A DNA stretch of 64,000 nucleotides, taken from sequence record NC_041994.1; one strand, given 5' to 3'. Made by a program: the position numbers and the translations under genes. Each line of letters begins with the position of its first letter. Within the stretch, counting starts at the first letter, position 1. Below, piece by piece: positions 35,885 through 40,191 of this stretch. A model generated the notes under the pieces. It made no database searches and had not been told where the DNA came from. It saw nothing but the letters and a program-made list of their open reading frames with translations.

Positions 35885-35923
35885 AGTGGGGGCTTCGGCC
35901 TCCACTCTCCCTTTTCCTTTTTT
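35885..35923 (+). terminator. Intrinsic terminator with cUUCGg loop
   Basis: AGTGGGGGC-ttcg-GCCTCCACT followed by a pyrimidine/T-rich tract. Confidence 0.8.
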
Positions 35924-35942: not shown

Positions 35943-36320
35943 GTGTCCGAACAAAACCAAGAACAGCTCCAGCAAGCTGAGCAAGACAAACTGGTCATGG
36001 CTGATCTAGCTCAGGTCTACGGCGAAATGCTGATGCGCCAGACCAAGATCAAACCGGGCGTGTTGCTGCGCGTCACCCGTGACTACGGTAATCCACATGC
36101 CGTGCCGTACGAACCCAACCTCCAGTCACAGCTTGTTATCGTTGGCGAGATCCAGCCAGACTTCGTCAAGGTGATCGAGCGTCAGCGTGGTATCACTGCC
36201 GAGCTGCTCAAGTTCGAAGAACGCATTATGGTTCTTGAACGCGAAGGTCGTGCTGTGCTACTCTCCCAGTACGACAGCTGGGAACTGTACGTGTCCGATG
36301 CAGCTCCTGCCGCATTGTGA
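35943..36320 (+). CDS. Hypothetical protein
   Basis: AGGAG SD before GTG 35943; good codon bias. Confidence 0.65.
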   Translation: MSEQNQEQLQQAEQDKLVMADLAQVYGEMLMRQTKIKPGVLLRVTRDYGNPHAVPYEPNLQSQLVIVGEIQPDFVKVIERQRGITAELLKFEERIMVLEREGRAVLLSQYDSWELYVSDAAPAAL

Positions 36321-36771
36321 CCTGTTTGAAACCCCCGGTGATTGCCGTGTCATTACGGTGAATTGCCTCGGTGCGATGGGTCTTGGTATTGCTGAGACCT
36401 TTCGTGACCGATACAAAAAGCAGTACTGGGAATACAAGCGTCGTTGTAAGCAGGGACAAGTCTGGCTGGGTGTCCCTGAGTTGATTCAAACCGATGACGG
36501 TTTGCGTTGGCTGTTGTTTCCAACCAAACACAACTGGCGTGAGAGTTCCCAATACAGCTGGATACAGTGGGGGCTGCAATACCTCATCGAGAATATCGGT
36601 GAGCCTGACTACGTTCAACACGACTGGACTCTAGTGTTCCCGCCTTTAGGGTGTGGACACGGCAACTTAGATTTCCAGCACATCGCTAGGCTCATGGACA
36701 TGTTTGATGGACATGTGCCTAATGACATTATCCTCATCGCACCACAGGAATACGAAATATGCGTCCTTTGA
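36298..36771 (+). CDS. Macrodomain ADP-ribosylhydrolase, DarG/TARG1-like
   Basis: DLF...[18 protein letters not shown]...Y...C..G...[14 protein letters not shown]...L...[13 protein letters not shown] is the DarG-macrodomain signature. Confidence 0.85.
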
Positions 36772-37199
36772 AACAAGCTGTCTACTCTTCGCGCACTGCC
36801 GATAAATTCGTTGTACGTCTGCCTGATGGCATGCGTGAAAAGATCGCAGAGCGTGCCCGTATCCATCACCGTTCGATGAACTCTCAGATCATCTCGGTTC
36901 TGGAAAAGGATCTGGCAATCGAGCTCACTGACGATGAGCGCGCACTGCTGGAGTTGGAATCCCACACCAACCCTGACGTGAAAACGCCTTTGCAGGTTGG
37001 CATGGCGGCGTACTACGACTACCTCAATGACGGCAAACTCGCCGTGGGTGTGGTCACCGGTATTGCCATCTCAATGGACGACGACGTCTTCGTGACATTT
37101 GACATCGTTAAGAATGCACCGACTCTGATCATCGGCAGTCGTGCTGACGATAAGCGTAAGTGGTTCCCTGTCGCTCAAGTCAAACCGTATTTGATCTAA
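36759..37199 (+). CDS. amrZ: AmrZ (AlgZ) ribbon-helix-helix domain fused to an unrelated SH3-like C-terminal domain
   Basis: [45 protein letters not shown] is nearly the recalled Pseudomonas AmrZ N-terminus; sequence diverges after [10 protein letters not shown]. Confidence 0.85.
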
Positions 37200-37215: not shown

Positions 37216-37581
37216 ATGGATCAGCTAATGGCTGTCTACGGGCAGCTACTTGCTGCCTACGATGCGATGCACAACTTGGCCCAACAGAACCTTGGTGTCA
37301 TCCTCGTTACCAACGCCCTAACCACCTTTGCCTTAGCCTTCGCTAAGGCATTCCAGTCACGGAACATTGTGCTGGGACACTACTGGGCTGCGTACGTTAC
37401 GTCTTGGGGTGTTACGACCCTTGAGGTAACGAACATCAGCCTTGTGGTGGTAGGCGGTTGGTGGTTGATCATCTCCGCCGGTTTCGGCGGTTCCCTAGGT
37501 TGCGTGGTCGCTATGGTCATGCACGAAAAATACTTCATGAAGCGAAAGCTTGCCGAGGAGGCAAAACATGAAACGCACTAA
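37216..37581 (+). CDS. Small multi-pass membrane protein
   Basis: 3-4 hydrophobic segments in 121 aa; AAGGGG SD. Confidence 0.65.
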   Translation: MDQLMAVYGQLLAAYDAMHNLAQQNLGVILVTNALTTFALAFAKAFQSRNIVLGHYWAAYVTSWGVTTLEVTNISLVVVGGWWLIISAGFGGSLGCVVAMVMHEKYFMKRKLAEEAKHETH

Positions 37582-38799: not shown

Positions 38800-38835
38800 C
38801 GGCATAGCGCCAGCCCTTCGGGGCTGGCCTATGTT
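38800..38835. terminator. Hairpin-family member (variant stem)
   Basis: CGGCATAGCGCCAGCCC-ttcg-GGGCTGGCCTATG. Confidence 0.7.
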
Positions 38836-39714: not shown

Positions 39715-39742
39715 ACCCTCCCCAGACGGGGAGGGATTTATT
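39715..39742 (+). repeat. Hairpin subfamily B, copy 1 (terminator-like)
   Basis: ACCCTCCCC-agac-GGGGAGGGATTTATT; 27/28 identical to 40164-40191. Confidence 0.75.
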
Positions 39743-40163: not shown

Positions 40164-40191
40164 ACCCTCCCCAGCCGGGGAGGGATTTATT
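40164..40191 (+). repeat. Hairpin subfamily B, copy 2
   Basis: ACCCTCCCC-agcc-GGGGAGGGATTTATT. Confidence 0.75.

Follow-up and report, generated by a model that had tools for sequence, protein, structure and literature searches.

Why does a virulent jumbo phage carry a gene that begins almost exactly like AmrZ, a transcriptional regulator of its Pseudomonas host, and then runs into something quite different? The gene in question, gp106, belongs to Pseudomonas phage Noxifer. This jumbo myovirus of the phiKZ type came from compost (PMC5543642) and has a genome of 278,136 bp and P. fluorescens SBW25 as its host; a recent preprint includes Noxifer in its list of chimalliviruses, the nucleus-forming phages. 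We analyzed a stretch of 64,000 nucleotides of this genome (NC_041994.1; hereafter the window), in which each position equals the position in record NC_041994 (MF063068) minus 62,000; the 2 kb surrounding gp106 match this record with 100% identity. An original prediction, made from the letters of the window alone, had placed an open reading frame (ORF) at 36759-37199, in exact agreement with the ORF list, and had described it as a captured host AmrZ fused to a new C-terminal domain. RefSeq labels the same coding sequence, FDI21_gp106, as 'Arc-like transcriptional regulator / putative DNA-binding protein'. The reading that we favor, with slightly better than even confidence, is that gp106 is a phage mimic of host AmrZ that would act on AmrZ-type host operators; its specificity, its targets, repression and the role of its tail are the parts of this reading that we infer.

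The gene and its parts are as follows.

36759..37199, plus strand: gp106, the whole ORF including its stop codon, 146 residues from an ATG start, with an AmrZ-like ribbon-helix-helix (RHH) head and a predicted beta-barrel tail
36759..36914, plus strand: AmrZ-type RHH, residues 1-52, assigned from Pfam Arc, PDB entry 3QOQ, conservation and the ratio of nonsynonymous to synonymous substitution rates (dN/dS)
36852-36854 and 36897-36899, plus strand: codons 32 and 47, site of a reciprocal clade-specific change (R32/V47 against V32/R47)
36915..36986, plus strand: variable acidic linker, residues 53-76, with a predicted helix at residues 58-69 (AlphaFold2 predicted local distance difference test, pLDDT, 56-76), poorly conserved within the clade
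36987..37196, plus strand: predicted small beta-barrel (Tudor/SH3-like), residues 77-146, with a clade-specific insertion, assigned from AlphaFold2 (pLDDT 83-90), Foldseek, hhalign and dN/dS

That the first ~50 residues are the DNA-binding domain of AmrZ, as originally proposed, is well supported. Pfam Arc (PF03869) matches residues 11-52 with E=9.8e-18, and the sole strong match of gp106 to the PDB by phmmer is AmrZ itself (3QOQ, E=3.5e-19), with an alignment over residues 1-55 that covers the N-terminal arm from Met1. Identical residues occupy 44 of the 52 RHH positions (85%) in the AmrZ of P. fluorescens PS918 and of nine other Pseudomonas/Stutzerimonas genomes (ten amrZ loci). The head had also been assigned to the fluorescens/putida-type form and taken as a hint at the host. 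The first part of this stands: P. aeruginosa AmrZ has two additional residues after KQA that are absent from gp106 and from non-aeruginosa AmrZ (P0066, P0093, P0041). The second does not carry far, because this form is common to all 80 canonical-tail proteins and is therefore a weak hint at the host.

We sorted the 120 best RHH matches by the region that follows the RHH, which yielded four classes: a canonical AmrZ-tail class (78 of the 120, mostly 108 residues long) and three phage groups, namely group A, made up of the 12 proteins of the Noxifer clade, group B, with 16 proteins of 126-161 residues, and group C, with 11-12 proteins of 121-130 residues. Conservation was compared across groups A (12), B (16) and C (12) and 80 canonical AmrZ proteins. 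Residues 9-27, a segment that takes in the DNA-contacting strand with K16, V18 and R20, vary little or not at all (conservation of at least 91% in each group), and these three residues, equivalent to AmrZ K18, V20 and R22, are invariant in all of them. K18 and V20 of AmrZ are reportedly DNA-contact residues. Changing R22 (R22A) leaves AmrZ deficient in DNA binding (PMC3946381). Elsewhere in the head, group A has gone its own way: position 32 is R in 11 of its 12 proteins and V in 105 of the 108 others (B, C and canonical AmrZ); 10 of the 12 have V at position 47, where all 108 others have R; and position 51 is D, as opposed to S elsewhere. In these alignments the Noxifer clade stands apart as a divergent branch, marked by helix substitutions that are its own.

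How the likeness to AmrZ came to be so close is answered at the codon level. The DNA encoding the RHH is 65-73% identical to bacterial amrZ, the same codon is used at only 13-22 of the 44 shared residues, and synonymous sites are saturated. On the strength of codon identity we thus reject a recent capture of amrZ from the present host, and since so few codons are shared at this DNA identity, the protein likeness has been kept by selection and not by recency. Comparing gp106 with two orthologues, we obtained dN/dS values of 0.06-0.11 in the RHH, 0.12-0.33 in the linker and 0.27-0.38 in the barrel, all approximate as dS is at or near saturation. The low ratio in the RHH, together with the saturated synonymous sites, therefore indicates that an AmrZ-like DNA-reading surface is actively maintained in the phages.

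The tail presents the opposite picture with respect to AmrZ. AlphaFold2, run twice with 11 and 37 aligned sequences, returned the same topology both times: the two RHH helices (residues ~25-36 and 40-51), then a helix in the linker (58-69) and, between 83 and 143, seven short strands (strand pLDDT 83-90). The RHH is of low confidence in this monomer model, as expected of an obligate dimer. In Foldseek searches of the PDB the head matched AmrZ, while the top match of the tail was the Tudor domain of ERCC6L2 (6hq9; template modeling (TM) score 0.73-0.74 on the target, E 7e-3 to 1e-2, root-mean-square deviation ~5 Å), followed by a trypanosome Tudor domain, 53BP1 and the MRG15 chromo domain, with all tail matches at E 7e-3 to 0.1. 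Tudor domains are SH3-like barrels, and the earlier description of a beta-rich, SH3-like tail is in this way supported at the level of fold, if weakly. As modeled, residues 77-146 superpose on these barrels (6hq9, the 53BP1 tandem Tudor, MRG15) with target TM scores of 0.53-0.74 and a Foldseek probability of ~1.0; however, sequence identity is 11-18% at these E values and there is no relation at the sequence level. The resemblance is one of fold class, not of family, and nothing in gp106 suggests reading of methyl-lysine or methyl-arginine. Searches of the tail against Pfam, NCBIfam, PHROGs and PADLOC gave nothing beyond the RHH, and the BFVD viral fold library returned only the Noxifer protein itself and then unspecific matches. 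Combining the dN/dS values with the model, we conclude that the gp106 tail is a folded domain under purifying selection and that both halves of the protein are constrained.

The oligomerization tail of AmrZ has indeed been replaced, as predicted. Where AmrZ has a 56-residue tetramerization tail, gp106 has a linker helix and a 70-residue beta-barrel, and no similarity between the two is detectable: the gp106 tail aligns with canonical AmrZ tails at an hhalign probability of at most 0.6%, and the same ceiling holds in tail-only comparisons of any phage group (A, B or C) with canonical AmrZ. We detected no homology of the group A tails to 13 canonical AmrZ tails (hhalign 0.6%, 10 columns, P=0.09). 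Those 10 columns are the best local match and correspond to residues 55-64, which the original prediction had read as a remnant of an AmrZ helix. The match is not significant, the motif lies ~15 residues out of register with the AmrZ tail and it is missing in about half of the clade, and we reject the remnant.

Neither the fusion nor its tail is a novelty of Noxifer, contrary to what had been supposed. A search of 5.8e9 proteins recovered ten full-length homologues (P0002-P0011; 59-82% identity, 144-149 residues), most of them on 268-284 kb contigs of Noxifer-like metagenomic phages. In the three contexts that we examined, the gene occupies the same position, between a series of virion genes and small ORFs on one side and a small membrane-protein gene that follows it, and its start overlaps the stop of an upstream gene of 131-157 residues. 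A more distant protein (P0052, 128 residues, 42% identity) is encoded at the equivalent syntenic position, and its tail matches the clade profile with E=1e-5 (small database). The RHH-barrel arrangement is thus syntenic across the Noxifer-like clade, with orthologues in ~11 metagenomic phages.

Beyond the clade, tail-only hhalign comparisons connect all three phage groups, which ties the tail to ~28 more AmrZ-like proteins of other phiKZ-like jumbo phages. Groups B and C align at 97.8% (E=1.2e-12), A and C at 89% (E=2e-6), A and B alone at 54% (E=1.3e-4), and A with the merged B+C profile at 92.3% (E=5e-7, score 38.9). In 200 column shuffles of this last comparison the score was 9.6±1.9 with a maximum of 18.7, and none of the 200 reached 38.9. 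Relative to groups B and C, the group A barrel carries an insertion of ~15-20 residues. The genome positions also differ from that in Noxifer: group C genes lie on ~120-277-kb phage contigs related to pPa_SNUABM_DT01, and group B genes adjoin phiKZ inner-body-protein and thymidylate kinase/synthase genes. All nine contexts of barrel-tail proteins that we examined are phage-like (phiKZ_IP, head-tail joining or jumbo-sized contigs).

The barrel was found only in company with the RHH. A ten-tail profile searched against the 5.8e9 proteins gave 28 matches, 28 of 28 with an Arc domain (PF03869), and hence no barrel tail apart from an RHH among them. The Noxifer tail by itself recovered only its own clade from 1.84e9 representatives by phmmer, plus two repeat-protein artefacts (P0121, P0122), and a word-seeded search with the tail yielded only close orthologues. 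Tail peptide patterns, a test that detects close relatives only, had no match in a collection that represents 185,579 species of bacteria and archaea by one genome apiece, which speaks against such a tail being common in chromosomal AmrZ variants. On this sequence evidence the barrel defines one phage-only family that takes in jumbo phages of several lineages and, probably, the Gp53 type discussed below; the gp106 fusion appears to be a real host-mimicry gene, yet not a unique one, its design being common to many Pseudomonas phages.

Within group C we observed a presence-absence difference. DT01-like metagenomic jumbo phages have the group C gene (L009:3930-4424) between a gene of 223-285 residues and a reverse-oriented gene of 155 residues, and the isolated phage pPa_SNUABM_DT01 is without it, with ~50 bp at that site (L015:3283-3335). 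The absence of the gene from DT01 at a syntenic site indicates that such genes are gained and lost as accessory cargo.

What do related proteins do? AmrZ homologues occur on 14 Pseudomonas mobile elements, and five of six tested complemented an amrZ deletion; three of the six, from PaBG, phi3 and JBD68, lowered expression of the Csy complex and CRISPR-Cas in P. aeruginosa (Borges et al., bioRxiv 10.1101/673095, whose text does not name Noxifer). The earlier statement that mobile AmrZ homologues can repress P. aeruginosa CRISPR-Cas is therefore documented. Like these, gp106 is an AmrZ-like RHH on a mobile element with conserved DNA-contact residues, and PaBG is likewise a jumbo lytic phage; the assays of those proteins for CRISPR-Cas repression were made in P. 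aeruginosa. The proteins differ in what follows the RHH: phi3 gp09 has only 81 residues, and the tail of PaBG gp184 (138 residues) is not detectably related to that of gp106. By hhalign, we found no relation to the barrel family for the tails of PaBG gp184, HRDY3 or EL gp163. A tblastn coverage of 90% on HRDY3 is therefore no proof of a shared tail.

Some of these proteins merit a remark in their own right. The 205-residue Arc-like protein of HRDY3 (314 kb; L002:5998-6615) joins an AmrZ-like RHH to a long, different tail, and EL gp163 (115 residues) and PaBG gp184 have tails of their own; among jumbo phages, the AmrZ-like head has thus been combined with several tails that are not related. RefSeq names both phi3 gp09 (L013:1501-1746) and EL gp163 (L030:1159-1506) 'partition protein ATPase', apparently from PHROGs 2685 and 795, a label that cannot be right given the size of the proteins and their RHH fold.

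The closest functional precedent is Gp53 of the 94-kb P. aeruginosa phage PhiPA1019, an early AmrZ-like RHH protein of 126 residues that binds and represses ftsZ, fleQ, pslA and amrZ and requires R15, R21, M35 and N36 to do so; Gp53 and AmrZ are not functionally interchangeable, and overexpression of amrZ neither copies nor rescues the effects of Gp53 (Commun Biol 2026, PMC13650114). Gp53 and gp106 are both phage AmrZ-like proteins longer than the RHH, and the four required residues have invariant equivalents in gp106 (R20, R26, M40 and N41). A protein of the same length, FBPa45_0026 (126 residues), is found in vB_PaeS_FBPa45, a 93-kb Samunavirus of P. aeruginosa; R15, R21 and N36 are present in it, and M35 is deduced from the neighboring residues. 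The tail of this probable Gp53 orthologue belongs to the same barrel family as groups B and C, aligning with group B, group C and the merged profile at 87-93% by hhalign. Differences from gp106 are nonetheless clear: Gp53 is shorter, comes from a 94-kb P. aeruginosa phage and lacks the first five arm residues, whereas the gp106 barrel has its insertion and a linker helix, and its tie to the Gp53-type tail runs only via groups B and C.

Taken with the head, these precedents lead us to propose how gp106 might work; the original prediction had supposed that it may reprogram receptor, biofilm or immunity genes. Its RHH would form the usual RHH dimer and recognize AmrZ-type operators by means of K16, V18 and R20 in the beta-strand and of the N-terminal arm, all of which are unchanged from AmrZ. 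During infection gp106 would occupy those host promoters that belong to the AmrZ network (motility/fleQ, exopolysaccharide, cyclic di-GMP, amrZ), and perhaps those of cell-division or defense genes, and would mostly repress them. Tetramerization and function of AmrZ need its C-terminal domain (Xu et al. 2016, as cited in PMC10146422), so a replacement with an oligomerization or partner role is to be expected; in the least certain step of the scheme, the barrel would stand in for the AmrZ tetramerization tail, most likely by providing a dimer-dimer contact, or a contact with another partner, without which RHH proteins do not bind operators stably. With such a tail the phage protein would no longer depend on host AmrZ, and some of its targets would be different; its regulon would overlap with that of AmrZ and yet not be identical to it, as reported for Gp53.

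Several points weigh against this proposal. R32, V47 and D51, located in the two helices of group A proteins, could alter dimerization or specificity, and they differ from all canonical AmrZ. FBPa45_0026 is probably a Gp53 orthologue by its length, the 93- versus 94-kb phages and three marker residues, not by the sequence of Gp53 itself, and its tail compared directly with group A gives only 0.5% by hhalign, leaving B and C as the link. If Noxifer is a chimallivirus, its protein nucleus and fast takeover may limit the value of tuning host promoters. Nor is early cytoplasmic action assured, given the translational link of gp106 to an AdfM-like gene whose homologues are nuclear and its position after the virion-gene block. 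Apart from these points, SBW25 is not known to have CRISPR-Cas, which makes CRISPR-Cas repression less obviously relevant to Noxifer.

The same head and tail could serve a different end, in which gp106 pairs with AmrZ monomers or occupies operators without forming tetramers and so switches the AmrZ regulon off. An RHH 85% identical to that of host AmrZ would suit such a dominant-negative partner, as would the absence of the tetramerization tail, given that AmrZ without its C-terminal domain is described as non-functional in the work cited by PMC10146422. Yet the tail is conserved, folded and under purifying selection, not a mere truncation, and the R32/V47 swap lies in helices that build the RHH core and may work against mixed dimers. 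Gp53, moreover, represses promoters directly, and its effects are not reproduced by amrZ (PMC13650114). We regard a dominant-negative role as quite improbable.

A more speculative elaboration concerns the barrel. R32 and V47 may compensate for one another and so bear on whether mixed dimers with host AmrZ can form. It is conceivable, if unlikely, that the barrel is a phage-invented module that rewires the AmrZ copy: by making it a self-contained oligomer with R32/V47 blocking mixed dimers, by docking the DNA-bound protein to a partner of phage or host origin (RNA polymerase, for example), or by docking it to the nuclear import route of the AdfM-like enzyme.

This enzyme is encoded immediately upstream of gp106, in a neighborhood with the following features.

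35885..35906, plus strand: terminator-like hairpin upstream of gp104, with a 9-bp stem, 6 GC pairs and a T-rich tail (consensus scan); inferred 5' boundary
36298..36771, plus strand: gp105, putative DarG-like macrodomain (AdfM-like), hypothetical in RefSeq, assigned from PADLOC DarG, PDB entry 5m3i and PhiPA3 gp108
37216..37581, plus strand: gp107, holin-like membrane protein directly downstream of gp106 (phrog_7045 'holin', E=3.3e-28; RefSeq 'holin')
38809..38828, plus strand: terminator-like hairpin after gp109, with an 8-bp stem and 7 GC pairs (consensus scan); inferred 3' boundary

The stop of gp105 overlaps the start of gp106 by 13 nucleotides, and an overlapping upstream gene is likewise present in the Noxifer-like metagenomic phages L003, L004 and L006. 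Gp105 matches PADLOC DarG with E=2.9e-33 over the macrodomain part only and PDB 5m3i with E=1.4e-20, the Pfam Macro match lies just above its cut-off, and the protein is 40% identical to PhiPA3 gp108 and phiKZ-group proteins. We therefore assign gp105, by sequence, as a stand-alone DarG-type macrodomain of the AdfM family. In chimalliviruses AdfM (anti-DarT factor macro) is imported into the phage nucleus and strips DarT2 ADP-ribosylation from phage DNA (PMC13309987). The six tightly packed genes gp104-gp109 between the two hairpins suggest one transcription unit that holds AdfM-like, AmrZ-like and holin-like genes. A canonical chromosomal amrZ locus (P0040) has quite different neighbors, and gp106 differs from AmrZ also in belonging to a virulent jumbo phage and not to a chromosome.

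This setting invites the question of whether gp106 regulates the phage's own genes in the manner of Arc or Mnt, possibly inside the nucleus together with the AdfM-like enzyme, with its AmrZ likeness due to common RHH ancestry or re-used specificity. Its domain belongs to Pfam Arc, and in the phmmer search of the PDB P22 Mnt ranks second (E=0.027). Mnt and gp106 both have a distinct C-terminal module behind the RHH, although that of Mnt is a helical tetramerization domain and not a beta-barrel, and the sequence similarity is weak. A tight block between two terminator-like hairpins, an overlap with a gene whose AdfM homologues enter the phage nucleus, and a conserved syntenic position across the clade, as for a core regulatory gene, all fit this explanation. 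Against it, the 13-nucleotide AmrZ consensus from chromatin immunoprecipitation has 4 matches in the window at no more than 2 mismatches versus 2.78 expected, none of them near the gene block. AmrZ boxes are thus not enriched in these 64 of 278 kb (23% of the genome), a weak test made with a P. aeruginosa motif, which may differ from gp106's own; on the same terms, no phage operator comparable to those of Arc and Mnt was found. The group C gene missing from DT01 at its syntenic site marks these genes as accessory rather than core, and the near-identical strand and arm in several unrelated phage lineages and genome positions are more easily explained by selection for host operators. Regulation of phage genes thus seems to us unlikely.

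The neighborhood also bears on whether gp106 regulates transcription at all, as opposed to being, for example, a ParG-like segregation adaptor or an antitoxin-like partner of a neighbor. It adjoins a DarG-like antitoxin domain and has weak Pfam matches to FitA-like, ParD-like and HicB RHH antitoxins, and PHROGs 2685 and 795 are labeled 'partition protein ATPase'. All of the antitoxin matches, however, fall below the cut-offs and reflect generic RHH features only, next to a far stronger match to AmrZ; PADLOC has no match for gp106, and no toxin or ParA-like gene was recognized among its neighbors. The PHROG label, for its part, cannot fit an RHH protein of 80-160 residues. We consider a non-transcriptional function highly improbable.

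Set beside its relatives, then, gp106 as an AmrZ mimic shares with AmrZ the N-terminal arm and Arc-type RHH and parts from it after residue 52. Phage-borne AmrZ homologues, their action on host promoters and the Arc-like annotation of gp106 are already known. Added here are a tail modeled as a folded Tudor/SH3-like barrel, the phage-only family that this barrel defines, the divergence of the Noxifer clade within it and the coupling, in that clade, of the AmrZ-like gene to an AdfM-like gene. Phage copies of AmrZ are known to tune host immunity and physiology, and many virulent Pseudomonas phages, several phiKZ-like jumbo lineages among them, carry a near-unchanged AmrZ head with one common phage-only barrel. 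This makes for a defined family that lends itself to testing, its members having a constant DNA-reading part and differing in the tail, and the Noxifer-like phages indicate a conserved pairing with the anti-DarT enzyme AdfM. Coevolution of phage and host is often studied in SBW25, where mucoidy and motility phenotypes matter, and gp106 is a candidate that may act on those pathways.

A few observations concern the surrounding genes. Gp107 looks multi-pass, and a holin-like gene in an apparent accessory or counter-defense block, away from any recognized endolysin, is odd. A sigma-70 scan, which is inappropriate for phiKZ-like phages, gave fewer sites than expected, and an alignment downstream of four terminator-like hairpins was uninformative as to a shared promoter motif. 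Further downstream, at 39716-39735 and 40165-40184 on the plus strand, stand two near-identical GC-rich hairpins that differ by one loop base and are each followed by an ATTTATT tail; lying 450 bp apart after successive small genes, they form a repeated terminator-like element.

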